From: Asterias rubens
Lineage: Eukaryota
NCBI RefSeq assembly: GCF_902459465.1
Contig: NC_047069.1
Coordinates: 17,236,001 to 17,300,000 of the forward strand
Length of the DNA: 64,000 bases
Direction of reading: 5' to 3'
The notes beneath the pieces are model-generated. The model was not told where the DNA came from. It was given only the letters and a program-made list of their open reading frames with translations, and searched no databases. Made by a program: the position numbers and the translations under genes. Shown here in pieces: positions 9,729 to 31,882 of this stretch. The first letter of the stretch is position 1. Each line of letters begins with the position of its first letter.

Positions 9729-11384
9729 AGGGTCTTGGTACTTTTTGCAGGACACAAAACCAATGTCTACAGATTAACATCAAACTCACATAGTTTGTAA
9801 AAAACATTACTTCCCGAGGTCCTGTAGTTTTGAGAAGTTAAGTCGCGAAAATAGTTTTCCTCTCAGGAGTTGAACATTATGTTTGCATGTTAAACATATT
9901 TTTGTGACATTGTTTACTCGTTTCTCAAAAACTACAGCACCCCAGCAAGTAATATTTTAAGGGAAGCCTTCTAACATTATCTTCAAACTGTAAAAGTTTA
10001 ATGTAACTCTCTGGACATTGGGTTTTGTGTTATAAAAAGTACACCAATCCTGAAAAACCTGGTAGAACAATACATCACATGAATTTAAATTGTAGTATTT
10101 ATGTGCCAGTGCATGTCATCATGTGAGAGGTTGTCTTTATATATTTGTAAAGTACCTTGCAAAAGCAACCACAGTTTGTGATGCTTCATTCTTAAAAGAT
10201 TGAGGACACCAGTGCGTTTTCTCAAAGGCACCTCTGTGAAGAAATCGTATATACCAGTACATGTATTTCTGTTGGAATGTTTGCTGGGGCACCAAGGCAA
10301 TGACCAGGGACATTGTTACCGCCTTGAAGCATCAGGTCTGCCTTACAGTAGCTCATTGGTAAACAATGATACTCCCTTGGTGAAACAACTGAAATCGTTA
10401 AACTTAATTATTCTTTGACATGTACATAAGACAAGTTTTGTTATTATTTTTGTTTGTTGATCTGAGCCCAATTGCATTAACACTCAAAAGCTCTTCTAAC
10501 TGCAGAATTAGGTTGTTACGCGCCGTTTGAAAAAAAACATCATTCTATTGCTGTAAGCGCAGATTTTTCGCAGTAAGCAGAGGGATGAAGTTTGACCCTG
10601 TTTACTTCAGTAAATCAAGAAGATCATTAAAATTGCCTTCAAGATCGGGTCAAAACCCCAATAGGGTAGATTACTTTTTAAAGTTTTCCTATTTTTATTT
10701 CAAGGGTCAGATACCATGTGTGGATGTATTTTGCTTAATATTTGTCACTCTCTCTGCACATATACATTATATGTAGACTAAAGGAGATTTTGATCTGTGC
10801 TGATATGCCTGAAAAATAATCTCATGCCTGAATGGCAACAAAGATGTTACTGTTTGATTTTAAATTGTATATACATGCCTGGAATTTCATCTTTGAGTTG
10901 GCAAGAGCATTGTAATTTTGCAAAGGGCTAGTTCCATTGGAAAATGTCCAAGCTAAACGTATGGTAAAAACTATTGAAGGGGCACCAAGGCCAAGATCAG
11001 GGCAACAGAGGCAATGTCTGTCTTTATCGTATAAAAGTATTAAAACGTTCAACTTTTTTTTCTGAAAATATGATTGTTTCAAACCTGCTTGGAATATACA
11101 TGTACAATACAAGCATACTACAGATGATTAATTTAAACGAGTGTGATTCTTGTTATGAAGTATTATTGTATTGCTATTAGTTTGTGATCAATAACTGTAA
11201 AGAGTTTACACAAGTTAGCACCGCTCGGATTTGTAAAATATATACATGTAGCACCTAGCACCTAGTTTTTGTACAGATGTACAGAAGAGATATGAGGAAT
11301 TAAAAGCTTGGTTTAAAGGGAAACTTTGCAGCTGTTTTGTTGTCTATAAGCCTATTTATCAAAACATTTTCTAGGTTTAAAAAG

Positions 11385-11820
11385 TTGATTTTTAGCTGGA
11401 TTTGAACCTGAAACTTCTGTTTTTATAAGTAGATGCTCTACCAACTGAGCTTTATCTATAGACTGAATATTTGTGGTATCCCTATGTTTGTGGTTGCCAA
11501 CCTCTGTATTTACATGTAGGTGCTCTACCAACTGAGCTTCATTATTGGTGGTATCCCTATGTTTGTGGTTGCCAACCTCTGTATTTACATGTAGGTGCTC
11601 TACCAACTGAGCTTCATTATTGGTGGTATCCCTATGTTTGTGGTTGCCAACCACTGTATTTACATGTAGGTGCTCTACCAACTGAGCTTCATTATTTGTG
11701 GTCTCCCTATGTTTGTGGTTGCCAACCACTGTATTTACATGTAGGTGCTCTACCAACTGAGCTTCATTATTGGTGGTCTCTCTATATTTGTGGTTGCCAG
11801 TCGGAAGCCATTCAAGCTGT
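11385..11820 (-). repeat. tRNA-SINE head with internal 75-bp tandem amplification (~4.5 units)
   Basis: Each unit contains AGCTCAGTTGGTAGAGCA (A-box) on the minus strand; a single GGTTCAAATCC B-box at ~11398-11408. Confidence 0.8.
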
Positions 11821-12526
11821 AATTGCCATGTAGACTGGGATCGCGTCCAAATTTCAGATACAACCTGGTTCAAGTCCCACTCAGTCAGTTTTCCATGCGG
11901 TTTTTTTCTATTTGTAGTTCAAATAGTACTGTTTTTGTATGTCGCCCCCAATCTTGAAGAAAGAATGCACTTAAGATTTGTGAGAAAAATCAAAGGAACA
12001 CCAAAGGAAGTGGGTTCAACAAGGAGATTCTGCCCCCCCCCCCCTCTCTCCTCCAATACGGCGAACTGTGTACAAACTACTTCTGATAGCGCCCTCTTTT
12101 GAAACATCCTCTTTAGCCCCTGTTAGTTTTTTTTTAAATGGGTGACAGAATCTTTGGCCGACCGATTTCCCTGGGACACCGGGCCCGTATTGGATAAGGC
12201 TCGGCTCCTGCTTTCTGTTTGTTCAATGCTCGAAGAGAATGTTGCATGCAGAAGAACGTAGTGCGAATTGGGTGAATCTGCCCCAAGACCATCATCAATC
12301 CGATTGGTATATTGACAATCTCATTTCAACCGGAGTGTGTTTCGGTTACTGTTAACTGTTTCTAGGACCAATATTCAACAAATGGAAAGTTTTTGTAAAT
12401 AATTATTGTCGTCATCGAAAATCAAGACATATGACTAATTTAATGTTGGGCAATTGCCTATACTGGCTATGTGTCTGAGGAAAATACCAATTGGAGGGAA
12501 TCGTTTTGTGTGCGTAAACCTTTATA

Positions 12527-12536
12527 GGAAATCCCC
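12527..12536 (-). promoter_or_regulatory. NF-kappaB consensus site (GGGGATTTCC), cassette 1 promoter
   Basis: GGAAATCCCC on plus strand; fits GGGRNNYYCC; same position as the site in unit 2. Confidence 0.55.
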
Positions 12537-12745
12537 CCGCGTGTACACCCCATGGCTAAGTTTGGCTCTGCTTACCGCCCAATTATGCACGTACGATTCA
12601 CCGCTTATTATACTAGATTCAAGTTCTTGGGATAGGCCTATACATGGCTGCATGAGCTAAAATCATACGCATTGTGACCATTTTGAAAACGGTACATAAT
12701 TCAAAAGCGCTCGAACGAGATTGGTTGAGTGACCTTTCGCCCTAA

Positions 12746-12755
12746 CCAGGAAGTG
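12746..12755 (+). promoter_or_regulatory. Ets-family site CCAGGAAGTG (also 15281-15290 and 18685-18694)
   Basis: Identical in all three cassettes, ~140 bp upstream of each ATG. Confidence 0.55.
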
Positions 12756-12891
12756 CGGCACCATAAGATGAGTATTTTATTCGATTACAAGCAGTATAGA
12801 GTTTGTCATTCATGCTGCACGAGTTCAGCACAACTATCTGAACTAATACCGTGCAATAAACAGACTTATAGTGATCTGCATAGAGGCAACT

Positions 12892-12958
12892 ATGAAGTCA
12901 CAAATTCTTAGCTTATACTGTGATTCACGTCTCATTGCTTTGCTTATTTTTCTTGAAG
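12892..12958 (+). CDS. RTK variable cassette 1, signal-peptide exon (MKSQILSLYCDSRLIALLIFLE-G)
   Basis: ATG, hydrophobic core, donor AAG|GTAAGC; 67 nt, phase 1, matches the V1 acceptor. Confidence 0.85.
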
Positions 12959-13562
12959 GTAAGCTTGACATTATTTATAATTATAAGTTCATTGGTAAAA
13001 CTCAATTACCTATTTTGTTCAACCGCAAATAGTTTAAAAAACTTTTACCCACAGTTGAGTTTCCCTTGTGGTTTATTACTTAATATTTAATTTACAATAA
13101 AAACAGTTTGAAATTCATTTCAATTAAATCCTATGTCAAATAGGTCAAACAACAAGATCAGAACCAGAAAAAGTGCACAATATTTGGAAGCAGATAATTA
13201 ATGTACGACAATGACAACCGATTACAATCGTAAACATTCGTAAACAAAGCCTTTAAATACGTTTACCTGTGCTGTGTGTCCATACGGACCCACTTTCATG
13301 GTCAAACATAATGGCTTTAAGGCGGAATTTTGAATAACGGTTCATTGATAAAAGCAGATATTATTACAAAAACAACCACATCGAGCAATTTATTGTTGAT
13401 TTTCCTATACGAAGTAATACTAGTAATTAATCAACATAATAATGTAGGGGAGCTTTTTCAAGCCCTCTTAAAAACAATTTGCCGTAAAACGATAATTAAA
13501 AAAAAAGGGGAGCAAACAAAATAAGATTTTAAGCACGAAGCAATTGCCCTTGATTTTTGCAG

Positions 13563-13901
13563 GAGTTACTACACGGCCAGTTATTTCTGGCGAAGCATGG
13601 GCAGATATTGGAATGGACACCGTCTTGACATGCTCACCTGGAGATGGAACGTTATTACAAGTTAGATGGAGAGATAGCAGCTTCAACAATGATGATATTG
13701 ACAACACGATCACTATAGCGAGAGTTGTGTTAGCAACTGGGGATCTCATCAACAGAGATGAGACGCATTATGGATTTGATCCAAATGATCCTTTGTATCC
13801 ATTAACAATAAAACAAGTGACATTGGATGATGAGGCTAAGTACTGGTGTCAGGTGTACATTGCTGGTTTTATACATGACACAAAGGAAATGCGAATAAGA
13901 G
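13563..13901 (+). CDS. RTK variable cassette 1, V-type Ig exon
   Basis: TTTTGCAG acceptor; C..W..LTI.QV.LDDEAKYWC V-set motif; AG|GTAGGA donor; 339 nt, phase 1-1. Confidence 0.92.
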
Positions 13902-14630
13902 GTAGGAACCCAGCTATCAAATATCATTTTAATGCACATTATGTTACCATAGAAATGAAACAACTATATATGGAATTGCTACAGGAGTGTTACCTATAAT
14001 TTTATATCAGAATGCAAAGTCTCTGTCTCTTTATTCAAAGTCTATTGCGGTTAAAGCCACAGGCGTGAACCTGGCTGCAGGTGGACTGGCAAAACTCTCT
14101 AGACTTGGAGAACTGCCTAAAGAATTAACAACATATTCATGTGGAACAGTATACCTTATTATTCGTCATGCATGCTGATTGTCTAAAGTGAGTACAACGC
14201 AATGTTCCACTCAGCATACTCCCCTCATTACAACGAATGTCATTTTCTTTTCAAAAGAGAAGTGACTGGACTTTTGCCCAAAATGATCAAGAGAGCATTT
14301 TGTCATCTTCACAAAAATAATGTAGCGGAAATGCACCTGACGAACATGTGACACCAAAAATTTAACTTCTATGTTTTTGCTCCATTTTTATAAGGTGGGT
14401 CATGGAGCAAGGTCATGCGGCTATCTCCCGTACGATTGACTTTCTTTCACAAAGAGTGATGATTTATTCTACCTCAACCATACAAAAACAAAAAGTACAT
14501 AACAAGGCACAATAAAGAAAATCAAATCGAAACAGGAAAAACAAAAGAAAAGATACCCTTCCTTAATATAATCATTGAATCTCCTTTAAAACTATTGGGA
14601 ACTTCCGTATACAAACTTCTGCTTCAAGGA

Positions 14631-15017
14631 TTAAAGGCAGTGGACACTATTGGTAATTGTCAAAGACTAGCCTTCACAGTTGGTGTATCTCAACACATGC
14701 ATAAAATAACTAAACTGTGAAAATTTGAGCTCAATCGGTCATCAAAGTTGCGAGATAATAGTGAAAGAAGAAAACACCCTAGTCACACGAAGTTGGGTGC
14801 GTTTAGATGGTTGATTTCGAGACCTCGAGTTCTAAACTTGAGGTCTCGAAATCAAATTCGTGGAAAATTACTTCTATCTAGAAAACTACTCCACTTCAAA
14901 GGGAGCCGTTTCTCACAATGTTTTGTACTGCCAACCTCTCCCCATTACTCTTTACCAAGTGAGGTTTAATGGTAATAACTATTTTGAGTAATTACCAATA
15001 GTGTCCACTGCCTTTAA
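14631..15017. mobile_element. Complete Kolobok-like family A MITE at the unit 1/unit 2 junction
   Basis: TTAA-AGGCAGTGGACAC...GTGTCCACTGCCT-TTAA. Confidence 0.9.
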
Positions 15018-15078
15018 TATTCAACTGAAGGAAAAATACCAATTGGAGGGAATCGTTTTGTGTGTGTGAATGTTTATA

Positions 15079-15088
15079 GGGAATTCCC
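15079..15088. promoter_or_regulatory. Palindromic NF-kappaB consensus site (GGGAATTCCC), cassette 2 promoter
   Basis: Exact motif at the homologous position, ~350 bp upstream of the ATG. Confidence 0.55.
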
Positions 15089-15427
15089 CCGCGTGTACAC
15101 ATGGCCAAATATTTGGCTATGCATAACGCCGAATTATGCACGTACGATTCACCGCTTACTTGATTCAAGTTTGTGGGATATAGGCCTATAAAACGCATTG
15201 TGCCCATTTTGAAGAAAAAAAAATTAAGGTACAATTCAAAAGCGCTCGAACGAGATTGATTAGATGACCTTTAACCCTTACCAGGAAGTGCGGCACCATA
15301 CATTAGTTTTGTATTCGATTAAAAGCAATAGTATAGAGTTTGTCATTGCTGCACGAGTTCAGCACAACTATCTGAACTACAAAACCGTGCAATTAACAGA
15401 CTTATAGTGATCTGCATAGAGGCAAAA

Positions 15428-15491
15428 ATGAAGTCACAAATTCTTAGCCACTGTGATTCACGTCTCATTGTTTTGCTCATGTTTCTTGAAG
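15428..15491 (+). CDS. RTK variable cassette 2, signal-peptide exon (MKSQILSHCDSRLIVLLMFLE-G)
   Basis: 64 nt, phase 1, GTAAGC donor. Confidence 0.85.
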
Positions 15492-16020
15492 GTAAGCGTG
15501 ACACTATTTACAATTATAAGTACATTTGTAAAATTCAATAACCGCAAATAGTTTCAAAAAGTTAACCAGTGAGTTTCCCTTGTTGATTATTACTTAATAT
15601 CTTATTTACAATGACTACAATTTGAAATTCATTTCAATTAAATCAATGCGTCAAAAAGGTGTCACAAGATCAGACAAAAATGTACGATAATGACAATCGA
15701 TTGCAATCGTAAACATTCGCCTTTAAATACATTTACGTGTGCTGTGTGTCCATACAGATCCACTTGCTGGTCAATCAACATATTAGGCTTTAAGGCGGAA
15801 TTTTGAATAACAGTTCATTGATGAAAGCAGATATTAATACAAAAACAACAACATCGAGCAATTTATTTTTGGATTTTCTCATGCCAAGTAATACTGGTTT
15901 TTAAAACGACAAATAATTTGTATGGGTAGCTTTTTCAAGCCCCATTAAAAACAATTTGCCGTAAAACGATAGTTAAAAAAAGGGGGGAACGAAAAAGATT
16001 TAAAGCATAAGGCAAGTGTC

Positions 16021-16196
16021 TTAGGCCCTTTTCGAAACCACGGCTTCGGCTTTGGATTCGGCTTCAGGCTCCATCCTGTCGTCTGAAGCCCTGGGCGCGT
16101 ACGCAAAGCACGCGCAAATTGTCAAAACAACCGAGGGGCCAATCTAGCCTGAGCCGAATCCAAAGCCAAAGGCGTGGTTTCAAAAAGGGTCTTAAA
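16021..16196. mobile_element. Harbinger/Tourist-like palindromic MITE with TTA target duplication
   Basis: TIR GGCCCTTTTCGAAACCACGG..; absent at the homologous site of unit 3 (GTGTCTTAGAGAG). Confidence 0.75.
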
Positions 16197-16215
16197 GAGC
16201 CGTTGATTTTTGCAG

Positions 16216-16554
16216 GAGTTACTGCACAGCCAGTTATTTCTGGAGATACATGGGCAGATATTGGCTTGGACACCAGTTTGTCATGCTCACCAGGAGATGC
16301 AATATTACTACTGAGATGGGGAGATGGCAGCTTGAACAATGATAATATTTCAAGCATGTCTACTATAGTGAGAGTGGTGATACCAACTGGGGATCTCATA
16401 AATAGAGATGAGACGCATTATGGATTTGATCCAAATGATCCTTTGTATCCATTAACAATAAAACAAGTGACATTGGATGATGAGGCTAAGTACTGGTGTG
16501 AGGTGTTCGTTGGTGGTGTTTACAGAGATGACACAAAGGAAATGCGAATAAGAG
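16216..16554 (+). CDS. RTK variable cassette 2, V-type Ig exon
   Basis: 339 nt, phase 1-1; same splice contexts as V1. Confidence 0.92.
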
Positions 16555-17004
16555 GTAGGAGCTCAACTATCAGATTTGTGATGTGGATTGCTACAGGAGG
16601 GTTACCTATAAGTCAGAATGCAAAGTCTCTGTCTCTTTATTAAAAATCAATTGCGGTAGTCTCTGTCTCTTTATTAAAAGTCAATTGCGGTTAAAGCCAC
16701 AGGCGTAAACCTTGCTGCAGGTGGACTGGCAAAACTCTCTGGACTTGGAGAATTGCCTAGCAGATTCATGTGGTACAAAGGCCTACCTTATTATTCGTCA
16801 TGCATGCTGATTGTCTGAAGTGAAGTAAAACGCAATGTTCCACTCACCATACTCCCCTCATTACACCGAATGGCATTTTCCTTTCAAAGAGAAGTGACTG
16901 GACTTTTGTCCAAAATGTTCAAGAGAGCATTTTGTCATCTTCACAAAAATAATGTGGCGTATAAATGCATGTGACGAACATGTGACAGTAAAGATTTAAC
17001 TTCT

Positions 17005-17172
17005 CTTGTTGTGATTGTTGGGGTTGAACAAAGAATTGACTAGAATTGGATTCGAGCCAACGACCTCCGGATTAACGTGCCGGCGCTCTACCAACTGAGA
17101 TATCTAACCCTATGTTGGCGGTGTCCCTATTTTGTCAATGTCTTTGTTCGGGGTGCCAGTCAGAAGCCATTC
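17005..17172 (-). mobile_element. tRNA-derived SINE inserted in unit 2 only
   Basis: Reverse complement carries TCAGTTGGTAGAGCGCCGGCACG (A-box) and GGCTCGAATCC (B-box); absent at the matching site in unit 1 (~14370); a related copy lies at ~55585-55735. Confidence 0.75.
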
Positions 17173-17574
17173 TCTTATTTTGCTCCGTTTTTATAAGGTG
17201 GGTCATGGAGCAAGGTCATGCGTCTATCTCCCGTACGATTGAGTTTTTCTCAAAACAGTGATGATTTATTCGACCTCAACCATACAAAAACTAAAAGTAC
17301 ATAACAAGGCAAAACGAAGAAAATCGAATCGATCTGGAAAAAACAAAAACAAAGCAAAAAATAACCTTCCGTAGTATAATCATTGAATCTTCTTTAAACC
17401 ATTGAACTTCCGTATACAAAATTCTGCTTCTAATATTCAACAAATGAAAAGTTTCTGTAAATAATATTTGTCCTCATCGAACATCAAAACGTTAGTCATT
17501 AGTTGGGCAATTGCCCATACTGGCTATGTGTCTGAGGAAATTGGAGGGAACCGTTTTGTGTGTGTGCGCTTCAT

Positions 17575-17880
17575 ATCTGCTTATGTTCCTTCAAGTTACG
17601 CTATAATACCAAAAGGTACGCTTTCAATCCCATGTCAAGTTACGCTTACGTTCCAAGATACGCAGCTACGAATTACGTTCCAAGATATGCTTACGCTCCA
17701 AAAGATACTGTTACGTTCCAAGCTACGCAGCTACTCAGCTACGCTTATACACTCCAAGATACGTTTAGGTTACGCTACAATATCAAAAAGTACGCTTTCA
17801 ATCCCGAGTCAAGCTACGCTTACGTTCCAAGATCTGCAGCTACGGTTACGTTTCAAAATACATTCTCACAAAGACGCTTT
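17575..17880. repeat. Degenerate TACGC/CAAG tandem repeat block inserted in the unit 3 promoter
   Basis: Repeated TTACGCT..TTCCAAGA units and an internal duplication (~175 bp period). Confidence 0.8.
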
Positions 17881-18827
17881 TGAATCCCTCAAGATTTCCT
17901 TCCCCCAAGATTAAAAAACTTTCACTGTGAATAACACTACAGGGCCCACCAGTTAACATCTGTTTGGCAGAAAATACTGTACAAAATTGCTTTACTATCC
18001 AAAAATTTAGGTGGGCACTAGGCATAAGTCTACAACATTTCAAATTTAATTAAAAATTGGCTGGTCACCAGTTTCTTCTAAGCAATACTATTTTGTGCTA
18101 ACTATAAGCAAATTGTTTAGCCAATACAGGCTTCATCAGTGTGGGCCCTGGCACGTCGGGAGCATAACGCCACGATCGCATTTCAAGCTGCATCGTGGCA
18201 ATGCAGTAGTCTGGATCTGGATATTATACATAGAAAGGTTTGTGGTGGTACCGCAAACCTTTCTTTATCGTATTTCCACCATGTGGCAAAGTTTCAAATC
18301 CTACTGATCTGGACATTATTATACTCCGATAAAAACATATACCCACACACACATGCAGAGTATAGCAAAAGTCATGCAACGCAATTACTGCATGCATTGT
18401 ACACTGCATGCGCAACACTGATGAATTATTCATGAGCCAACCGCAACGCAGCCACTGTTTGGCTCCACCGGAAAGTCGGGGGAGATTTGCCGAAAAACAA
18501 TAAAAAAGTTAAGACCCGTCGTTGCAAATGTCCTAGACCTTGGTGAGCACAGGAAATCAGAGAAACAGAGCGCCCGCTAGCGTTCGTTCATTACAAGCGT
18601 GTACAGTTTTTGCCGTGCATAATCGGAACGTTGGTTTTGTGTGACCACGCAACACCAATGGTCTAGGAACCTAGACTACCCTAACCAGGAAGTGCGGCAC
18701 CATAAAATAAGTATTTTATTCGATTACAAGCAGTATAGAGTTTGTCATTCATGCTGCACGAGTTCAGCACAACTATCTGAAAAACCGTGCAATTAACAGA
18801 CTTATAGTGATCTGCATAGTGGCGAAA

Positions 18828-18876
18828 ATGAAGTCACGTGATTCACGTCTCATTGTTTTGCTTCTTTTTCTTGAAG
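18828..18876 (+). CDS. RTK variable cassette 3, signal-peptide exon (MKSRDSRLIVLLLFLE-G)
   Basis: 49 nt, phase 1, GTAAGC donor; in-frame deletion relative to cassettes 1 and 2. Confidence 0.82.
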
Positions 18877-19325
18877 GTAAGCGTGACATTATTTACAATT
18901 ATAAAGGTAGGCCTACATTTGTAAAATTCAATTACTTTTTGTGTTGAACCGTAAATAATTTTTAAACAAATTACCCGGGTGAGTTTCCCTTGTGGTTTAT
19001 TACTTAATACTTTATTTACAATAACTACCATTTGAAATTCATTTCAATTAAATCCATGTGTCAATAAGGTCCCACAACAAGATCAGAACCAGAAAAGGTG
19101 TAATTGGAAGCAGATAATTAATGTACGACAATCACAACCGATTGCAATCGTAAACATTCGTAAACAAAGCTTTTACATACGTTATCCTCTGCTATGTGTA
19201 TGGACCAACTTTCAGGTCAATCAACATATCATGCGGAACTTTGTATAATGGGAAATTCATTATTTTAAAACAGCAATTTGTTCAAAAACAACAACATCGA
19301 GCATTGTTTTAAATTTTCTTTATAT

Positions 19326-20320
19326 ACTATAGGTTTTCTCGGTCAAATTCGGCAAATGAGCAGCCAATTTCATTTTCAGGCGCTCGAATTAAAGCTATTT
19401 TGCCTCTCCGGTTTTTACTGTGTTTCAAACTCAGAATTCGGTCATTCTATTTCGTTTTGAGGCATTCAAGTACCTAGCACACTCATTCTTTTTCATGACA
19501 CACAATCAACATTCAATTTAGCAAAGCTGGTTCGACTAGAGATTTTGCTGATTTAATCATTTTCAGTTTCGTAAAGAGGCAATTAATTTCGCTCACCGAG
19601 GATTCAAATAAGTACGACTAAAGAAATACGAATACATGTAAACAGAAAAACTGTGCAAACCGTTTCGTACTTTCACAGGTTCAAGATGGAATGCTCTCTT
19701 CAAAAAGGCGAAGTCGAGTTGAACACTAAAATCAATCTTTAAAAAACTGAAGAAAAAAAATTCTTTATTTTATGTTTCCAGTAGACTTTACCTTGGGTCC
19801 CACAAGGGTTGTTTTCTTCTTTATTTTTTCGGGAGACCTACAATGGTTAACTGACCAAGACCTGACATTTGAATAGGTTTGAATGGTTTTTTAGTTTTTT
19901 TTTAAATGTTTTTAAATATTCACCAACCATCTGTGTTGGCGTGCCAGACATCTTTGGCAAATTATGTTCAAGAGTGCCAAAACATTAACCGCATGCCTTT
20001 AACATTCGTATAAGGAAACAACAAGTTAACCAAGCGTTTCTAAGACTGCAAAACTATCAGAATTGACTGCCTCAAAATGAAATCGAATGACTAAACACGC
20101 GCCTCAAAAACACTCCTGAGAATTTGAATGCAGCTTCGATGAATTGTTAAATTGAATGATTATTTTGTTAACTCGAATTACGTAAAAGTAGAATTGACTA
20201 GTCTTAAAATGAAATCGAATTACCCTTTTTTAGAAGCATTCGATTTCGTGCGAAATAGAATAGGCTGGTGGTTAAATTGGCTGCTCATTTTTCCGAAATT
20301 GACCGAGAAAACCTATAGTA
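19326..20320. mobile_element. ~1-kb non-autonomous TIR DNA transposon in cassette 3 intron
   Basis: TIR CTATAGGTTTTCTCGGTCAA.TTCGG.AAATGAGCAGCCAATTT at both ends; empty site in units 1 and 2. Confidence 0.8.
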
Positions 20321-20465
20321 ATTAAAACGAAAATTAATTTGCAGTGCAGCTTTTTCAAGCCCCCTTAAAAACAATTTGCAGTAGAACGATACGTAAAAAG
20401 AAGAGGCAATGAATACGTTTTAAAGCACAAAGCAAGTGTCTTAGAGAGTTGTTTATATTTTGCAG

Positions 20466-20807
20466 GACTGACTGCACAGCCAGTTACTACTGGCGAAGCA
20501 TGGGCAGATATTGGCATGGACACCGTCTTGACATGCTCACCTGGAGATGAAATATTACAACTGAGATGGAGAGATAGCAGCTTGAACAATGATGATTATG
20601 ACAACACATCCATTATAGTGAGATTGGTGAAAGCGTCTGGGAGTCTCGTCAACAGAGATGACACACATTATGGATTTGATCCAACTGATCCTTCATATCC
20701 ATTAACAATAAAACAAGTGACATTGGATGATGAGGCTAAGTACTGGTGTGGGGTGATAGATGTTAATGGTTTTAACAAAGATGACGCAAAGGAAGTGCGA
20801 ATAAGAG
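20466..20807 (+). CDS. RTK variable cassette 3, V-type Ig exon
   Basis: 342 nt, phase 1-1; TTGCAG acceptor; AG|GTAGGA donor. Confidence 0.92.
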
Positions 20808-21212
20808 GTAGGAGCTCAACTATCTTTGTATCATTGTCATCTAGATGCTGAACAGGCTTTGATGAGAACCAACATAGCTGTAAAATGCACATGTGATACC
20901 ATGGTAATGAAAAATATTATGAAATTGCTACAGGAAGTTAGCTATAGGTTTGTATCAGAATGCAAAGGTCTCTTTATTCAAAGTCAATTGCGGTTAAGCC
21001 ACAGGCGTGAACCTGGCTACAGGTGGATTGACTTGGAGAAATGCCTAAAGAATAATATAACCGATTCATGTGGTACATAGTTTTGTTATTCGTCATGCAT
21101 GCTGATTGTCTAAAGTGAGTAAATCGCAAGGCGAACATTATTCCACACACTGATTCCCTCATTACACTGAATAACATTTTCATTTTAAAAGGGAAAAGAG
21201 AGCATTTTTGTC

Positions 21213-22165
21213 AGTCACCTGGAAGTGGTATTTTTTCAAAATAAAACTTTTACAGATTTGTGTTTTGATGAGTGGAATGTGAATAACAATTAACTAAGGT
21301 TCTAAAAAAAATCGTCCTCATTTTATAAATACAAATTTAAGAGTAGACCCCACCCGAGAGGGCGCTGTTTGTGACGTCAATCGAGGCGCGACATTTGAAG
21401 AGAAAATGTGTAGTCTGGGCTCCTTAAACTACGTCTGGGTACCTGATTGATCGGTATGATGCCTACGTACACAACTATGGCCACGGAGCAGACTGCTGCG
21501 CGCACTACGGATGCTGTGCATGCGGACGGTCCATGAATCGCAATTCTAAAAACATGCCCTCAAAGTTAAAACTTTTAGCCGAATTATTCACGTTTGGCAT
21601 ACGCTCTTCTAGGTTCGTCACGTCTTTCAGGTACCTTCTTTGATTTCTCACTCTTGAAAAGTTGTTGGGATGGCTTCATAATCTTTCTCTTCATGTCAAA
21701 TGTGTGGTGTATTCCGGATTCGAAGCACGACGGCTCGAAGTGTTCGCTGCACAGCGCTGGAAAAGACGTCGGCCCGGACCACTGTTGCTCTTGTTAGTCC
21801 GACTTTCGCGGCCCACAACCACCCATACTTTGTATCTGCAGGAAACACATGCAACTTAACCCCATCTTTGTTGTTTTGCTGCATCCAGCAGCAATACACC
21901 TGGTCTACATTGCCGGGAAAAAAGAAGAAAAAAAAACTTTTTTCGAAACGTACAAACTCACGACTTGGACCGCATGTACTTTGCACGTGTGTTTACTCTA
22001 TACGCCTTGTAGGCAACGCCTGCCTCGATTGACGTCACAAAAGGGGTAGGCGGAGTCAGCCCCAAACAACTTTATCTATTTTTTAAACTTATAAATCGTG
22101 ACAAACAATTACTTAAATTTTGTTTTATTGTCCATAAGCTTAATACTCTTATGTTTGAAAGATTT
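21213..22165. mobile_element. Kolobok-like element (AGTCACCTGGAA family), longer inverted relative of 29911-30489
   Basis: Shared arms with TGACGTCA and CCCGAGAGGGCGCTG motifs. Confidence 0.7.
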
Positions 22166-23273
22166 TTGTTTATAAAGACAACAACGCAGTAAAGGACTTG
22201 TTATAATATGGTTATAATATGGACAACTGCTCAGAGTGAGTGCACTGCAATGGCCTCCTTCAAAGAAGTTTTTAAGAGTGCGATAATGGGGGGGGGGGGG
22301 TTGTGTCAGCGATCAAGTACGACAAAATGCATGTACAGAACGGGCATGTTCAATACCCAACATAGCTCTTGTTAATGCACACCGGGCTCTGCACTGTGGC
22401 GACCACTTCTTTTTTGCGCTGCATGTGCTGTGTCATGTTTTGTTCTGGTAAAACATGTCGGCCATTTTTAATATGAGTTTCGTCTTTTGGGGTCTGTTCG
22501 AGTGCATCATTATGTCGTCAGGCCAAGAATGTTCGTGCAATAGTTTTTCGTGTGTTATTTTATTGTGTATTTAAAGATATTTATGCACAAACCACAACCT
22601 AATGAAGTTGGCAGCTTCACGAATGCCTGAATGAATTGTGTAGCGGGACGCTTTATTAAAACTTGGTCACTTCGCCATTTTGTGACTTTCCTGAGTAAAG
22701 TAGCTACATAAAACACCGTAGGGTTGATATTGCTGCTGTTCAAAGGTCACTGAACAGGGCCAGATAGAGTTTGCGATAAGGTTCTAAAATCCTCAGGGAA
22801 CTTTCTCCGGTTTTAAGGGACCGTTTTCAGTGGTGTTCCGTTCACAGTTCCTCAAAATTTGGAAAACTGCAGATGGCATTCCTGTTGCTAAAACTTGTAA
22901 ACCTAGAGTGCTTTGACGGATTGTTAAAGATTTCATTGTTGAGCAAACTTCATCTTTCATTGATCCCTTGCATTTTGCCGATTTCACATTTTTGCAAACT
23001 AATAAAACGCTCACTGAGCGATAAACTCCAAACGGTTTTTAGGTGAAAAAAGGCAACCAAACGCATGTGTACACATAGAATGGCCAGTTTGGACGAAAAT
23101 GGCATATCTATAGCAACTACGCGAACTGGCCCCTAGAAAACTGGACCCTTTTTTACGGAGTGGCGCAATAAGGCCTCGGTAAACTTGCATTTGGCCTGTT
23201 TTCACACCAGTGAATCGTTAGAATTAAACTATATCCAAGTCCATCACATTAATGTCTGTTTTTTAATTTCCAG

Positions 23274-23618
23274 TTCCGCCTGCTACCATTTCTTTAACCT
23301 ATAAGAATACCATCTACGCCGACCAAGCTGATGTTGAAGTGATAGCAGGAGATGGTCATCAGTTTAGTTGTGAGACGCTCGGCATCAAACCTAATGCAGA
23401 CTTCACCTGGACTCTTCAGGGTACACCACTTTACCAAGGACTTCCTGGGACTGCCACTCCTAATAGTGGAGATAGCAGATTGAGTGACAGCTTGAGTGCA
23501 GTATCTGTGAATGTTCCAGAGAGTCCGGCAGTGCAGCAACTGACATGTGGTGCTACTAACAGACAAGATGGGAATACAGATACTGAGAAGGATACTTCAG
23601 TAACTATACAAGTCAAAG
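23274..23618 (+). CDS. RTK constant exon, Ig domain 2
   Basis: TTTCCAG acceptor; VPPATI..FSCE..FTW..LTCGA; AAG|GT donor; phase 1-1. Confidence 0.9.
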
Positions 23619-24205
23619 GTTCGGACTTGAATTACGTTCGAATTTAGATTTGTTTTATTGTCCGCATTATAAATACACAGAAATTTGGCTTCCATTTGCA
23701 TATACACATGTACAAGAATAAAATATTTGTTAAACAACATGCTGGCATGCATCAATCCAATTGCTTTATATCCGACACTCGTCTCTAGCGACCTAGTGCA
23801 AAAATCTTGCTGTGAAAACAGCTCGACCTAACTTAAAATGCTGACTCTTTTTAAATGATATTTTATTTTAACCCCAACTCAAGTGTTACACTGACCTAGG
23901 GATTATATTCTTTGCACCGTTGTGGTTCTGTACTTCTCGTTAAAATGTTATGTGAGTAATTATAACCGTGGTTCCATTTTCTAGCTCTCATTTCGCTGTA
24001 TACTATATAGTTATGCTCTTTTGTTTCTGAGCAGATTTTTTAATACAAGTAAGGAGAAACAAGTTTCGCAGCTAGCAATACACTGTCATCAGATTATTAT
24101 TGATTAATTTCAGTCGGTGTTATAGTGTTACGCTGTATTTGTTTTTGTGTCATCGATGTGAGAAATTCCGTTAAGATAACCCTGTTTGAGGTTGTTCTTT
24201 TCCAG

Positions 24206-24532
24206 TTCCTCCAATATCATCCAAAATGACTCTCCAAGGAACCAACTCAGACGGTACATTATCTGTAGATGAAGGTTTGATGAGCACAATCACATGCGTT
24301 GTTATGGGTACCAGACCATCTGCAGATATCAAGTGGTTTCTCAACGGTGTAATGCAGTCTGGTGGTACAGTATCCCCACCTTCAGCAGACTCTGATGAAC
24401 TATATGATACCACAGGATCTTGGTGGATTACTCCAACTAGGAACAACCATAAAGATGAGATGATGTGTCAGGCAAGCACTCCACAATCACACGGAGATCT
24501 ACCAAAGGTGACAGCAGTACTCAATGTGAATG
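24206..24532 (+). CDS. RTK constant exon, Ig domain 3 (C2/CD80-like)
   Basis: ITCVVMGTRPSADIKWF..MMCQA; phase 1-1. Confidence 0.92.
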
Positions 24533-24965
24533 GTACGTAACGAACACTCATACACCATTGGAAAAGGACGTTAGAATGAGTTGGTGAAATCGACGGCTGG
24601 TTCCTTGAATTGTTAAAGGTTTTATCACCAAAGCAGGTTCCTGTGATGTTCCCCTACATCCTCACTTGTTCTTTAGTATTAGTGTGAACGTAATAGGCAC
24701 TAATATAACGTGTATTTAAAAAAGAACAGTTCGATGTATAAATGCCCTAATAAATTGGATCGCTACATTACCGGTAGTACAACTTTTTCAGAGCCACTCT
24801 AAAGGGATTATTAATAATGCAATTCCTTTATTTAGGAAAGAGACGCAATAACAAATTTATTTACCCATGGCAGGGAGGTTGGTGTATTCTTTAGTGATCA
24901 GCAATTCTGTCTTAAATTTTCTATTGTCAAATGACGATGTTTGTTTCGTCTTCGTATGCATGTAG

Positions 24966-25268
24966 GTCCTCCAGACACTCCGAGCATAACCGGCAATACA
25001 CAAATGACTGAGAATGTACAAACTAGTCTGATGTGTGAAGCAGACATGGGGTTTCCAGACGATTGGAGTTTACATTGGTTCAGAGAAGATACAGCAATAA
25101 CACCTAACCCTACCACAACGCCTTCATCCTCAGGAACTCGCTTCATGTTCACCAGCACTCTGGACTTCACACCAATCAGAGAATATAATGGACATACCAT
25201 CAAGTGTGGTGCACAAAAGAATTCAATGAGTGGTTCAACGGCAAAGCTAGGTCCGATAGATGTTCAAT
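24966..25268 (+). CDS. RTK constant exon, Ig domain 4
   Basis: GPPDTP..LMCEA..LHWF..YNGHTIKC; phase 1-1. Confidence 0.92.
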
Positions 25269-25504
25269 GTGAGTTAAGCATTTTGTCTGTTGACCCCTAT
25301 TGACGTCTCGCGCGGCTATATTAGTGAGGTTCAGCTGCACGTTTTAAGATTAAGGTTAACAATAATTGTCATGATAAAAAAAAGAAATCTGTCTTTCCTG
25401 CAGTGTACAGGGGAACTCTACATTCCGCGTAAACGTCAGAAAATATTGTGTCGTTAAAATCTCACGTTTTTAGCATAATTATGTGAAGTTACCATTTTTC
25501 ACGT

Positions 25505-25655
25505 CAGGTTAGCCTTTAATCAAGGCGCACGCGGCGGCGGCACCCCCAGATATCACGCACGAAAGCAGACCAGCTGGTCTTTTTCGTGCTTGATATCTGG
25601 GGTTGTGCTTGACATCTGGGGTGCCGCGTGCGCCTTGACTTGAGGCTAACGTCAG
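25505..25655. repeat. GC-rich imperfect palindrome (MITE-like hairpin)
   Basis: GTTAGCCT..AAGGCGCACGCGGC / GCCGCGTGCGCCTT..AGGCTAAC centred on GACCAGCTGGTC. Confidence 0.75.
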
Positions 25656-25987
25656 GTAGGCCTACGTGCGCGTAGACGTCATACGTGAGCATGCCCAAAG
25701 TGGCAACGTGACCCAGAAACAACACCATATTTGACGTTCACGTTCACGTATTTGCTCGCTACTGTCTGCCCATAATCTGCCATTTTTGGTATGTGTAACT
25801 AAATTAAATGGTAACTTTTCTTTTTGTCTAAAAGAGAATACTGGACGTGAACAAACGTGGAATCTCAATAAAAATTGCGCAATCAGATGTACGTTTAACG
25901 ACGTCGGGTAAAAGTGTGAACAAAGTTACGTTTTCTTTTTAATCTAACAATTTAAAAACCTGTTTCCGCCATCTTTATTTATTTTAG

Positions 25988-26305
25988 TCTGTGCAAGATA
26001 TGTGACCATCATGGCATGTGCGACTGCCACTGCTGGCAACACTGCTGTATTAAGATGTGTATCTGGCAGTAGTAACCCAGGCACTACACTGACATGGTCA
26101 AGAGATGGTATGGATCAAACTAACACTAGTCCTCAACCAGACTCTGATGGTAGCAATGGAGGCATCATCACTACACTAGACATCGCAACCAACGTGTTAA
26201 CTAAAGATGACAATGGTGCTGTATTCCAATGCAGTGCGTCTAATGATGCAGTCACGTGTGGAGTCGACATTGACGTCACTGATTCATGTACACTGAATGT
26301 GCAGT
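25988..26305 (+). CDS. RTK constant exon, Ig domain 5
   Basis: LRCVSGSSNPGTTLTW..DNGAVFQC; phase 1-1. Confidence 0.92.
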
Positions 26306-26786
26306 GTAAGTACATGGGTGGTATTACTTCAAATACAATTTTAATCATTTTTCGCTAAATACGTGACATTTTGATGATTTTTTTACAGCAACCATCTATA
26401 AAAACATTATTTATGATTCTACACCCCTAAATTGTAAACGGTGAGCCGGTGTGTCCCTTTAAATTAATTGTAATGGAACAAAGAACAGCAATACTGATCG
26501 ACAACAAGATATATAACAGCCATGTTTGAGCATCCTTCCTCCATGGTTTGAGACTCAAGACTGTTCTTCAAGACTGCTCCAAGACTAGGTGCATGTCTCA
26601 TTTGACCATTTTCATATGAATATAAATATATTTATATTAAACAGTTCAACCCCAAAAGTAGAAAATTATTTCAAGGTCATTATTGCCACATGATGTGCTG
26701 TATGGACTTACACAAAAAGTTTTGTTGTTTCTTTCACAATCGCTGTCCGACTTTGGACTAGATTTACCTTTTATACTTTTTTGCAG

Positions 26787-27083
26787 ATACTCCTGAGTTT
26801 ACTGCAGCCTCAGTCAATCCCGTCACCCCAGTCATTGAAGGTGGTGAAGTCATCCTTACATGTACTGCAGATGCTAATCCTAAACCTAGTAACTTCATCA
26901 TGTGGGAGAAGCAAGACTCCCCCGGTACAGTACTTAGCAGTGTTTACAATGATGGAACCAGTACTCTAACATTGAGTGATATCCAGAGAGATCAAGCAGG
27001 GAGCTATAGATGCAAAGCTAACAACGGGATACCAACGAGTAAATCAGATGTGTTTTCGGCATCAGTGATTGTCAAAGTACACT
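26787..27083 (+). CDS. RTK constant exon, Ig domain 6 (I-set)
   Basis: YTPEF..LTCTADANP..W..DQAGSYRCKANN; phase 1-1. Confidence 0.92.
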
Positions 27084-27501
27084 GTAAGTATATGCATGTT
27101 TCTCATGTTTACTGTTTGTCTATCAAGGTTAATTTGTTTCTTTTTAAATTGACTGCCATAGGATCGAGTTGCTGTGTTTTACCCTGTAATGTTTTAGATG
27201 ATACGTCTTTTATCGTTATTTATCGCAAGTAAAGTGTTATCCAAAGCAATTGTGGCCATCGAGGATATATATATTCAGGCTGTTGTACAAACTGTTGTAT
27301 CAATATTCAATATAGAATATTTCTTCGTTAATAGTTTGGCATGTACATGTATACTGATTTAAACTTCTCTATTGACCTGCCTATAAATAAGTTATCTAAA
27401 GTGGACATTTAAACAAAATAAAAAATTGCCGTGTCACTGTGATTGTGGTTTATTTGAGAACACTGTTGCATAAGGTCTTCACGCACTTTTTTAAACAACA
27501 G

Positions 27502-27828
27502 ATGAGGTTAATGTCACCAACAAAGAGGACAATGAGATGGGTGTAAGGGATAACAATGATGCCAACTTAACATGTAAGGCAGTCGGCAATCCAGCGCCTG
27601 TCATGATGTGGTTTGATCCAGACAACGCTCTCATTTCTAGCACCAGAAATCCCGATAAGTACGCAGTAGAAGATACCACTATCGGGGATGACATCTATGG
27701 ATTCATGGTGATCAGTACCTTGACGATCAAGAGAGTGGACTCACGAGTTGACTTTGGAGTTTATACATGTCGCAGTTCTAATGGGATCGGACAGGTGGAC
27801 ATGCTGATGGTAGTTGTTAATAGAACAA
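27502..27828 (+). CDS. RTK constant exon, Ig domain 7 (I-set)
   Basis: LTCKAVGNPAP..W..DFGVYTCRSSN; phase 1-1. Confidence 0.92.
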
Positions 27829-27964
27829 GTAAGGTTATTTTGAAACCGTTATCCTTTAAGATGCCCCTTGCATAAGACTCAACCTGTGAATATGTTAAAG
27901 GTGGGGCTGTCATGCTTTCTGAAAAAAATCAGCAAATCTTAATACAATGACATGCATTTTCCAG

Positions 27965-28249
27965 GAAGACCAAATCAGCCGTCCGGTTTGGTATTGAACG
28001 GCCGTACTTCAAGCTCAATAGCAGTAAGATGGTCAGCTGGTTATGATGGTGGTGAGAATCAGTGGTTTCATGTCAGCCATAAGAAGACTGCAGACTCCTC
28101 AGAGACATTCAGCGATAGGATTGATGGAGGGGTGACTACATACAACGTGGATGGTCTCGAGTCATACACGGAGTACGAGATCAAGGTCTATGCTGAGAAT
28201 GACGTGGGGAAAAATCCCAGTCCTGCCAGCGTAGTGGAATACACATTGC
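27965..28249 (+). CDS. RTK constant exon, fibronectin type III domain
   Basis: P..L...SSSIAVRW..GLESYTEYEIKVYAEN; phase 1-1. Confidence 0.93.
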
Positions 28250-28671
28250 GTAAGTTCGTATGTTTCAATTTCAAATATTTTGCTCCCTTTATCGACACAA
28301 ATTTACAACACTTAAACTTTCTCTCTTTGTTCATGGACAAAGAGTAAACATTGTTTTTGCGTTGTACGAATGATCGAGGCGTGTGGATAAAAAACATCCC
28401 ATGAAATTGTTTTATCCAGACTTAAGGTGGTTTAAGGAGTGTTTTACTGCATAATACTCCTAACATCATTTTAAGCTGCATTTTAAGGGATTTTAATTAT
28501 AAATGTATCCTGAGTGTGCATCTTTCTATTTTATATAAACTGTACATTTGGACCAATGAGATCTACCTTTTCCCTTAAAGACTTACACAGGCTCTTTATT
28601 ATAGATTTCTATGAATATTTGTCAATATTTGTCAATAATTATACACTTTTTATCATTCGTTTCCACACCAG

Positions 28672-28692
28672 CTCAAGGACCAACAGATAAAG
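28672..28692 (+). CDS. RTK 21-nt micro-exon (PQGPTDK)
   Basis: CACCAG acceptor with pyrimidine tract; AG|GTTAGT donor; phase 1-1; not required for frame. Confidence 0.55.
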
Positions 28693-29150
28693 GTTAGTAT
28701 TATTGGTTATTGCACTTTCAAGATTCATCATCGTGTGTTTGCCATTGGATAAATAACAAGTGTTTTTTTTGTTAATTCGATTTCAACTATTGCAGTTTAT
28801 ACATTTCATGCATTTTAGTAAACATTTCTGATGAACCAACTCTGAAAACTTGATGAAGCAATCGCATTACCACCCGAACAAAACACATAATAATGGTATA
28901 ATGTTATAATAAGTTGATGTAAAATGATTTCACAAATAAAAATGTAATGCTTAAAATAGAATTTTGATGACTGTGGACATATCAAATTGTATATATAAAA
29001 AAAACATATTCTTTCAAAACAAAACATATTCTTTCTGTTTCTGTAAGAGACCTTCTTTAGCTGGAAGATTTCTACCTTTAACTATCAACTAAAACTTACC
29101 CTATTCATGGTTATTATATCGTCATGTTTATATTCTCGATTGAGCGTCCC

Positions 29151-30489: not shown

Positions 30490-30532
30490 CTGTTTAACTG
30501 TGTCGTGTTGTCTTAATAAACTTTCACTATAG

Positions 30533-30817
30533 GTTTAATTATTGAGTTTAACATGGATGCGGGCACAGTCAAGGTTACTGGATTGCAAGGCAAAGGATGC
30601 ATTCAGCTCGAGGTGAAGTATGAAGGTGGCTCATCATACTGGACAGAGTGTGGAGGATGTTTCACAACAGACTCTGAAGTGGTTCTAGCAGATTGGTGTC
30701 CACAAACTCAGAAACGAAGACGGAGAGCTATAGGGGATGTGGATGAAGTGCAGGCAAAGTATTGCCAAGGGAGTGGCGATAGTACACTCTGTAGTGATCC
30801 AATAACTCCTGAGGAGA
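30533..30817 (+). CDS. RTK exon, Cys-rich membrane-proximal domain with furin-type site KRRRR|A
   Basis: CACTATAG acceptor; A|GTAAGT donor; phase 1-1. Confidence 0.88.
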
Positions 30818-31202
30818 GTAAGTCTAATAAAGAGATAAATGGTTTCTCAGATACCCTAGCAACCAAACAGCTTACACTATTCCCGACAATTAAAGCAATC
30901 AGTACACCTACTTTTTACCTTTAAAGGTATGGGTCAAAGTGCGTTATAGCAACCCGACAAGATATTGTTATTTTGTTATAAATATGGTAATAAGCAACCT
31001 GCGGAATCTTTTGTGTCTTAAGTGCCCGTGTTGCTTAGAAATCGATAAAAGTATTGCTTTTTGAAATGTCTGTGGAGTACGACTCAATACAGCCATGAGA
31101 CACGGTTGGAACAAATCGCATCTAAACATGGACGGATTTAACGTTCTTATTGGAAAATACTGTGACAGTATTTTTGCTGTTTTCTCAAAGAAGACACTGC
31201 AT

Positions 31203-31791: not shown

Positions 31792-31882
31792 CTTTCAAAG
31801 TGGACTTTTATCAAACTGTCTTGGTAGTTGCAAGTATGCAGGGAAACTTAAACCTGATTTTATACCCCCATTATAGTTTCAG

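Follow-up and report, generated by a model that had tools for sequence, protein, structure and literature searches.

Three IgV exons that lie upstream of a single Ig6-FN3-kinase body in the starfish Asterias rubens probably act as alternative N-terminal IgV modules of one receptor, a judgement that applies jointly to the whole of the explanation given in this section. The receptor would consist of a V domain, six Ig domains, an FN3 domain, a transmembrane segment and a kinase, and each IgV module would be supplied by a two-exon cassette, in which a conserved upstream region precedes an ATG leader and a phase-1 V exon.

Three forces have probably shaped these V exons. Protein-level purifying selection would keep the core of the fold (A'-B, the strand-C Trp and, above all, D-E-F residues 67-95). 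Recurrent exchange of short tracts, by gene conversion or unequal recombination, would run through cassette exons and introns; it would recently have erased the differences between V1 and V2 in their 3' third and would also shift variable C-C'-C'' patches among cassettes, giving mosaic, highly divergent alleles. The third force would be relaxed-to-diversifying selection on the BC loop, the C-C'-C'' region and the FG hairpin, where replacements would build up no more slowly than expected under neutrality while indels remain in frame.

Organization of the locus and of the IgV exons

The window (the whole stretch of 64,000 nt that was analyzed) contains only three V copies according to tblastn, all on the + strand as are the other features described here: V1 (13563-13901; 339 nt, 112 codons), V2 (16216-16554; 339 nt) and V3 (20466-20807; 342 nt, 113 codons). 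Their limits follow the pattern cag/G...AG/gtagga, all are phase 1-1 and every one has a strong splice acceptor (ttgcag/), the cassette being made of two exons and not of a single acceptor-less exon. In 3/3 cassettes the V exon is preceded by a leader that has an ATG and a phase-1 donor. Leader L1 (12892-12958; 67 nt, donor gtaagc) is signal-peptide-like, L2 (15428-15491; 64 nt) marks the beginning of the next annotated gene, precisely at 15428, and L3 (18828-18876; 49 nt) is shorter in frame through deletions of 15 and 18 nt relative to L2 and L1, respectively. The duplicated units span 12481-14625 (upstream region, L1, intron, V1 and downstream intron), 15033-17430 and 18679-21212, the last with an insertion of about 1 kb at 19319-20316. 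Divergence is 5-10% in the cassette upstream regions vs. 13-19% in introns, and the three ATG leaders with their conserved upstream regions, together with the recovery of V1 and V3 from different runs, point to a separate start for each variable unit, the promoters being putative. The constant receptor body (23274-39088) starts with the phase 1-1 Ig exon C1 (23274-23618) and includes six Ig exons, FN3, a Cys-rich juxtamembrane segment, the transmembrane segment and the tyrosine kinase exons; it is collinear with the loci of Patiria (P0077) and A. amurensis (P0083).

The V exons encode a V-set fold. AlphaFold2 models (pLDDT 95.7 for V1 and 96.1 for V3) show strands A, A', B, C, C', C'', D, E, F and G, and the best Foldseek matches are VHH/VH, CRIg and the CEACAM8 N domain (TM 0.67-0.80). 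The V-set B-F cysteines, the strand-C Trp and the strand-F motif (C23, W35, DDEAKYWC95) are invariant in the three exons and 17 homologues. V-set (PF07686) is the top-scoring Pfam family for all three, with 27.0 bits for V3, 23.4 for V1 and 21.8 for V2, although the latter two fall below the gathering cutoff of 26. The peptides quoted in the earlier note are exact, both after the first Cys (PGDGTLLQVRW, PGDAILLLRW and PGDEILQLRW) and in the FG loop (CQVYIAGFIHDTKE, CEVFVGGVYRDDTKE and CGVIDVNGFNKDDAKE), as is its statement that the indels are in frame and located in loops: all V-exon indels are of 3 nt and map to the BC loop and the tip of the FG hairpin in the AlphaFold2 models. Variable residues, mapped by strand/loop topology only, also occupy strands A, C, C' and C'' as well as the CC' loop, a loop that does not correspond to a CDR. 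Rearranging antigen-receptor V segments were considered and rejected, since CACAGTG is absent from the + strand of 11000-24000, nothing resembling a recombination signal sequence (RSS) occurs at the V ends, and the exons end in AG/gtagga and encode their own G strand.

Probable joining of the V exons to the receptor body

The annotated gene that starts at the L2 ATG has a 470-aa product, exactly the length of L2, V2, C1, C2 and C3 plus read-through; with V3 the product would reach 474 or 584 aa. A contig from run X5 (contig 18) stops exactly at the V2 donor and continues with 283 nt from elsewhere. Because of this product length and this spliced contig, V2 appears to be joined to C1 with V3 skipped. 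The fraction of sampled V3 words recovered was 0.18 in X5, 0.09 in X1 (V1 words, 0.53) and 1.00 in runs X17-X19, which are not among the runs listed for V1. L1 is spliced to V1 at 12958/13563 in X1 and X5 contigs, and RefSeq LOC117293461, a model of 167 aa separate from the receptor, has L1 as its N-terminus and consists of L1+V1. A V1-to-C1 splice was not found in the X1 and X5 contigs, which were compared with positions 12700-18699 and in which V1 runs through its donor into the intron, and a search with C1 for spliced fragments of proteins, limited to 63-200 aa, gave no matches. The junction of a V exon with C1 reads ..RIR-V-PP.., as in single-V homologues. From these data we infer a single V per transcript, the join of V2 to C1 being indicated and those of V3 and V1 presumed by extension.

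The contigs also bear on two other arrangements. It is rather unlikely that V1 belongs to a gene of its own encoding a small secreted V-only protein, only V2 and/or V3 feeding the receptor, even though the RefSeq model is precisely this L1+V1 product, L1 is spliced to V1 in the 1190-nt X1 contig, which goes on for at least 750 nt into the intron, X5 contig 17 likewise passes through the V1 donor, and AATAAA and ATTAAA occur at 14511 and 14630. Against it, the V1 donor (AG/gtagga) is the same as the V2 and V3 donors, the tails read through from the three cassettes have neither sequence nor frame in common, and minor isoforms get dropped from contigs; moreover, the V1 read-through may be unspliced pre-mRNA, because V2 reads through too (in X6). 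Very little credence is given to a single protein that would always include V1, V2, V3, C1 and the following exons in tandem. The phase 1-1 V exons with good acceptors and an open tandem frame (698 aa through C3) would allow it, but each V has an ATG leader and donor ahead of it, the annotated product has the length given above, the X5 V2 contig lacks a continuation into V3, V1 and V3 occur in different runs, and one V of this type is present in all homologues and all A. amurensis isoforms examined.

Exchange among cassettes and possible selection on the variable region

Positions 13754-13849 and 16404-16499, which had been reported as identical over 96 nt, are indeed so and constitute the maximal V1/V2 run; the tract encodes the segment from the C''-D loop through the F-strand Cys and is the longest such run in the aligned cassettes (runner-up, 37 nt). 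Silent differences between V1 and V2 amount to 10.8/44.5 sites in the 5' part vs. 0/28.2 in the 3' part (p=0.005), where 49 consecutive third positions are identical (p=0.005). The identity of the closest pair switches along the whole cassette including introns (site-pattern clustering, 1090 columns, p=1e-4). V3 had been described as a patchwork, V1-like at its 5' end and V2-like after it; the mosaic is real (exon site-pattern clustering, p=0.016; V1-V3 fragment test, p=0.037) but its pattern is more complex, with alignment columns 7 and 11 V2-like, 27-75 V1-like, 84-99 V2-like and mixed affinities beyond. Sawyer's condensed fragment test on the V1-V2 tract alone gave p=0.28, a lack of significance that reflects how few sites of the region vary in any copy. 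The 29 core residues are also encoded, unchanged, by an exon of another asteroid (L002) that differs at about 7 silent sites; silent sites there are therefore free to change, and because the 29 residues are kept despite such changes the conserved core is also under protein-level constraint.

Two public alleles, known from short-read contigs and protein records, carry patches of other cassettes. The V1 allele of the X1 contig has 17 differences in the 74 nt of 13681-13754, 11 of them V2 letters, vs. 2 in the 265 nt outside the patch (p=1e-10); with a twelfth V2 letter at 13850, V2 letters account for 12/19 of its exon differences. SNP density in this allele is about twice as high in the exon as in the intron (p=0.01), and the codon changes of the patch are 9 nonsynonymous and 5 synonymous, a ratio below 1. 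The patch of an ENA V2 allele (P0073) is partly V3-like and nearly identical to the X1 V1 patch, and both lie in the variable C-C'-C'' region, outside the framework. Through this patch exchange the V tips differ by about 10% in protein between alleles. Gene conversion or recombination among cassettes is thus well supported by silent sites, mosaics and alleles, whereas the earlier proposal that it homogenizes the framework needs amendment: the exchange is not confined to the framework, as the allelic patches show, and the likeness of the D-E-F core is partly explained by purifying selection.

The evidence for diversifying selection on the V exons is no more than suggestive. In their N-terminal two thirds dN/dS is about 1 (0.7-1.1), and in the FG+G region it reaches 6-8 (p=0.05-0.16), with 7-11.5 replacements vs. 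0-0.5 silent changes in FG. At family-variable positions it is 1.2-1.7 (not significant) and at family-conserved positions 0.2-0.9. None of the dN/dS tests was significant, all p values outside the FG region exceeding 0.28. The N-terminal part shows nonsynonymous divergence of 0.16-0.20, which is no significant excess over the introns (0.13-0.16), and therefore relaxed constraint fits equally well. The reading frame is maintained, as indels are multiples of 3 in 5/5 coding cases vs. 26% of 78 noncoding ones (p=0.001) and the probability of zero stop codons under random substitution is 0.04. Of the suggestion that a ligand-binding face is under diversifying selection, the FG values offer some backing, although they fall short of significance and variable residues extend beyond CDR-equivalent loops; the variable region may bind a ligand, and selection there may be positive rather than merely relaxed.

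How far these patterns call for selection, or even for a biological cause, can be weighed on the same data. A substantial but lesser likelihood than that of the favored explanation is assigned to the absence of diversifying selection, with neutral drift, after tandem duplication, of weakly constrained surface loops and C'-C'' edge strands in a distal V domain, the fold core conserved, and occasional conversion explaining the identical tract and the mosaics. Values of dN/dS near 1 and never significantly higher, N-terminal nonsynonymous change close to that of introns, synonymous changes at a neutral proportion in the allelic patch and variation of identical positions across the whole V family agree with such drift; the excess of replacements over silent changes in FG, the active maintenance of frame and ORF in 3/3 cassettes, the twofold exon diversity among alleles and the fact that V domains of the A. 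amurensis paralogue again vary in FG-loop length and in C'-C'' speak against it. That the 96-nt identity is an assembly artefact, by collapse or copying between repeats, is scarcely credible: tandem repeats carry this risk in general and nothing more points to it, but of two independent X5 contigs record 16 (13651-13783) enters the tract from V1-specific sequence and record 18 (16404-16554) exits it into V2-specific sequence, both with no mismatches, and the P0073 allele has the same core joined to the V2 FG loop.

Significance and comparison with known systems

Allograft rejection and specific-looking immune responses occur in echinoderms, and we know of no polymorphic recognition receptor in this group. 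It is conceivable, albeit a speculative and improbable proposal, that the V cassettes form the recognition end of a germline-encoded, hyperpolymorphic sensor of self/non-self or pathogens wired to a tyrosine kinase, in which exchange of C-C'-C'' and FG patches would keep making new alleles in an MHC-like or chicken-Ig-like but germline manner and alternative promoters would pick the V displayed by a cell. If so, it would supply a candidate receptor for echinoderm allograft rejection. The A. rubens locus and a larger A. amurensis paralogue point to starfish receptor tyrosine kinases (RTKs) with exchangeable IgV tips. Even under merely relaxed selection, the three cassettes offer a compact natural system to study splice choice among acceptor-bearing alternative exons, as well as conversion that both homogenizes and shuffles variable exons, questions for which the vertebrate protocadherin and UGT1 clusters have so far been the chief subjects. 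Nothing relevant on an echinoderm V-cassette RTK was found in the literature searched. Leclerc's "sea star Ig kappa gene" was compared by eye and set aside, being a different sequence outside the starfish V family.

By analogy, the closest counterpart is the clustered protocadherin variable exons with regional conversion, in which the 3' part is homogenized down to silent sites and the 5' part stays divergent, proposedly under diversifying selection (PMC1852091; see also PMC1885805). As in protocadherin and UGT1A clusters, tandem variable 5' units, each with a start, lie ahead of shared constant exons, and as in protocadherins the 3' 49 codons of V1 and V2 lack the silent differences seen in the 5' part. 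Unlike in both clusters, there are only three starfish cassettes and the variable unit has two exons (leader and V), the V exon therefore having its own acceptor, to be skipped by upstream transcripts. In contrast to protocadherins, the domain is an IgV instead of cadherin repeats, the constant part is an RTK, and conversion also shuffles the variable region, visible as allelic mosaics.

Another invertebrate RTK, that of the sponge Geodia cydonium, has an Ig-like ectodomain which is highly polymorphic between individuals, with sites extending beyond loops, and for which self/non-self recognition has been discussed (PMC11926128). The starfish gene resembles it in having Ig ectodomain variation beyond loops; however, alternative cassettes are not reported for the sponge receptor, its Ig domains are not V-set with C'/C'', and homology is not implied. 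Germline V segments of Ig/TCR share with the starfish exons a separate leader that joins V in phase 1, a V-set fold marked by Cys23, Trp and D-x-A-x-Y-x-C (nanobodies/VH being the best structural matches) and length variation in CDR1- and CDR3-equivalent loops. They differ in that the starfish V has no RSS, carries its own G strand and a donor at its 3' end, and owes its diversity to germline and allelic variation, not to somatic processes.

Among other starfish, no V lies in the 10 kb ahead of the Patiria P0081 locus. The paralogous RTK of A. amurensis (XP_071806508-27) has the same V family and body plan, with at least nine RefSeq isoforms built on a common body, to which each adds a single leader+V module as an alternative to the others. 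It lies at another locus, whose kinase exons share about 50-83% identity with the window, with more cassettes, two V subfamilies and some modules with two extra Ig domains, and its variation is likewise concentrated in C'-C'' and a length-variable FG loop.

Leader and V cassettes of a receptor tyrosine kinase locus

The three IgV exons, V1 (13563-13901), V2 (16216-16554) and V3 (20466-20807), are each preceded by cag and followed by gtagga in phase 1-1, and tblastn found no fourth IgV exon copy in the window. Each has its own ATG leader exon with a phase-1 gtaagc donor, L1 (12892-12958), L2 (15428-15491) and L3 (18828-18876), located 590-1590 nt upstream of the V exon and encoding a signal-peptide-like MKS...LLxFLE. 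L3 is shorter than L2 by 15 nt and than L1 by 18 nt, both in frame, and specifies a 16-residue signal-like peptide. The duplicated unit (12481-14625, 15033-17430, and 18679-21212 for cassettes 1 to 3) runs from upstream sequence through the leader, its intron and the V exon to a point about 400-700 nt into the downstream intron. The leaders and the 160 nt upstream of them are the best-conserved cassette parts (5-10% divergence), and about 1 kb of the L3-V3 intron (19319-20316) is found in cassette 3 only.

The constant body (23274-39088), downstream of the cassettes, contains six Ig exons followed by FN3, Cys-rich, transmembrane and tyrosine-kinase exons, and is collinear with the homologues P0077 of Patiria ("TYRO3-like") and P0083 of A. 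amurensis. Joining any V exon to C1 (23274-23618), the first constant Ig exon, yields ..RIR-V-PP.., the same junction as in single-V homologues.

Pfam V-set ranks first for the V exons (21.8-27.0 bits; cutoff 26), and AlphaFold2 models V1 and V3 with pLDDT of 95.7 and 96.1, respectively, as a nine-strand V-type sandwich. Strand positions in the V1 model are residues 6-9 (A), 12-13 (A'), 19-24 (B), 32-38 (C), 49-55 (C'), 60-63 (C''), 69-71 (D), 80-82 (E), 91-98 (F), and 102-111 (G). The top Foldseek matches in the PDB are nanobodies/VH domains, CRIg and the CEACAM8 N domain (TM 0.67-0.80). The peptides quoted in an earlier note, made from the sequence alone, match the V1, V2, and V3 translations exactly, and the in-frame loop indels it described are placed by the AlphaFold2 models in the BC loop (the single-codon indel that follows the first Cys) and at the FG hairpin tip (the other two).

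Several repeats surround the cassettes. Immediately 5' of cassette 1, at 11393-11842, a tandem array with a 75-nt unit includes five overlapping 150-nt copies spaced 75 nt apart (64-99% identity) and has an open frame repeating ..WYPYVCGCQPLYLHVGALPTELHY... Intronic repeats at 14500-15100, 15900-16100 and 16900-17300 show summed contig depths of 1e4-1e6 in all four transcript runs. The last of these coincides with 169 extra nucleotides that cassette 2 has over cassette 1, carries an Rfam tRNA match (17037-17109, minus strand, 44.8 bits) with no ARAGORN call, and is probably a tRNA-derived SINE.

Alternative tips or tandem domains

The three V exons are read as alternative tips of one receptor and not as tandem domains, on the basis of the separate leaders, an annotated product, transcript contigs, the homologue junctions and the isoforms of an A. 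amurensis paralogue. The public annotation includes a gene that begins at the L2 ATG with a product of 470 aa, which is exactly the length of L2+V2+C1+C2+C3 plus read-through; V3-containing versions would be 474 or 584 aa long. A 434-nt contig of run X5 spans 16404-16554, reaches precisely to the V2 donor and has a further 283 nt that lie outside the compared stretch, and since only 0.18 of V3 words are present in this run, the splice partner of V2 is not V3. Run X1 contains 0.53 of V1 words and 0.09 of V3 words, and runs X17-X19, in which V3 words are complete, are not among the runs listed with V1.

L1 is spliced to V1 in contigs of X1 and X5, yet the V1 donor is read through into the intron for at least 750 nt (13902-14654; depth about 15 in X1), and the V1-to-C1 junction was not seen in the V1 contigs of these runs. 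The same L1+V1 read-through corresponds to RefSeq LOC117293461 (on record LR699099.1), the best protein match of the window, which is modelled as a 167-aa secreted V-only protein. This transcript may represent a soluble isoform or just unspliced pre-mRNA. AATAAA occurs at 14511 and ATTAAA at 14630, 3' of V1.

Exchange and selection among the V exons

The earlier note proposed gene conversion of the framework from a 96-nt identity between V1 (13754-13849) and V2 (16404-16499), which is confirmed as a maximal run and is the longest identity in the aligned cassettes (the runner-up is 37 nt). Silent differences between V1 and V2 amount to 10.8 of 44.5 sites in codons 1-64 and 0 of 28.2 in codons 65-112 (Fisher p=0.005), with 49 identical third positions in a row (p=0.005). 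Constraint at the nucleotide level is not the cause, because the 29 residues THYGFDPNDPLYPLTIKQVTLDDEAKYWC recur in the V exon of a second asteroid (L002 of assembly GCA_014845345.1), where about seven silent differences are seen. The comparison also shows that ordinary purifying selection keeps the residues of the D-E-F core and explains much of the core conservation, so that the "homogenised framework" consists of two superimposed effects. The L002 exon (73-448) is 81-82% identical to each of the three A. rubens exons alike, and has CCG at the acceptor CAG position, pointing to a pseudo-exon or to an error of assembly.

Along the sequence the closest pair among V1, V2 and V3 switches, with site-pattern clustering within the exon (p=0.016) and over the whole cassette (p=1e-4; 1090 well-aligned columns). 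Sawyer's condensed test is marginal for a V1=V3 block (p=0.037); for V1-V2 the scarcity of variable sites leaves it without significance (p=0.28). Mosaic blocks also occur inside the intron (V1=V3 at 13100-13199; V1=V2 at 13300-13399), and with those of the exon they indicate exchange across the cassettes generally, not aimed at the framework.

Alleles point the same way. A contig of X1, a run labelled as the same species, departs from the window sequence at 19 exon positions and also by a +1/-1 pair of indels that compensate each other; 17 of the 19 lie within 13681-13754 and two in the remaining 265 nt (p=1e-10), V2 letters occupy 12 of the 19, and SNP density is higher in the exon (19/339) than in the adjoining intron (18/717; p=0.01). 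The left edge of this patch cannot be a k-mer chimera, given that letters peculiar to V1 (13670 and 13676) come within 5 nt of where the patch begins; the right edge adjoins the shared 96 nt, which makes the link to the V1 FG loop less certain. In the encoded protein 12 of 112 residues are unlike reference V1 and the patch reads ..LNNNDFSNTSTIVRVVISTGDL... The ENA-derived V2 allele P0073, with V2 FG loop and V2 intron, reads ..LNNNDYDNTSTIVRVVISTGDL.., nearly equal to the X1 patch but with a V3-like DYDNT. Variable C-C'-C'' patches thus move between cassettes in the population, and conversion here both makes and removes diversity. On the silent-site, mosaic and allele evidence, exchange among the cassettes is very probably real; its restriction to the framework does not hold, as introns and C-C'-C'' are exchanged too.

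That the V exons are not drifting pseudogenes is seen from their indels and reading frames: the lengths of the five coding indel events, of which three fall in V exons and two in leaders, are without exception multiples of three, a property of 26% of the 78 noncoding indels (p=0.001), and the probability of no stop in any of the three under random substitution is 0.04. Variable positions number 10/27 in residues 1-27, 25/35 in 28-62 (BC loop, C, CC', C', C'C'', C''), 3/33 in 63-95 (D-E-F) and 9/17 in 96-112 (FG hairpin and G). By topology, this pattern would fit the C-C'-C'' half of the GFCC'C'' sheet and the top loops; the long CC' loop, which does not correspond to a CDR, is also among the variable parts. 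The dN/dS is 0.82-1.18 for the whole exon, 6-8 for FG+G (7-11.5 replacements vs. 0-0.5 silent; one-sided p=0.05-0.16) and, without significance, 0.67-1.07 for the N-terminal part, 0-0.34 for the core, and 0.2-0.9 and 1.2-1.7 for family-conserved and family-variable positions, a partition set independently from 17 homologues. Nonsynonymous divergence of the N-terminal part (0.16-0.20) matches that of the intron (0.13-0.16). Evenly spread substitutions with dN/dS below 1 everywhere, a pattern that the earlier note named as refuting its proposal, are therefore rejected, and omega above 1 is not established; judged on three paralogues and two partial alleles, the diversifying selection proposed earlier is plausible but unproven, its chances level at best. 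The observation made from the sequence is thereby confirmed and its interpretation supported in part.

Relation to known systems

Among described loci, those of the clustered protocadherin/UGT1 type come closest: regional conversion has brought the 3' parts of their variable exons to identity even at silent sites, and the 5' parts stay diverse, reportedly under diversifying selection (PMC1852091). Unlike these loci, the starfish cassette has two exons and its V exon has an acceptor, so that one defining feature of the type is missing; the variable domain is IgV and the constant part a kinase. A rearranging V segment is ruled out, as the plus strand of 11000-24000 lacks CACAGTG, no RSS was found at the V ends, and the G strand is encoded within the V exon. 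The published A. rubens "Ig kappa gene", compared by eye, is a different sequence and not a member of the V family. Literature searches found no paper on a starfish V-cassette kinase. A functional parallel is the RTK with polymorphic Ig domains of the sponge Geodia (PMC11926128). The paralogous kinase of A. amurensis (proteins P0033, P0082-P0092) has at least nine RefSeq isoforms, each with a single alternative leader+V module on a common body; the modules belong to two different V subfamilies, some with two extra Ig domains, and model P0085 fuses two leader+V modules. The V-cassette architecture is thus already displayed by the isoform models of this paralogue.
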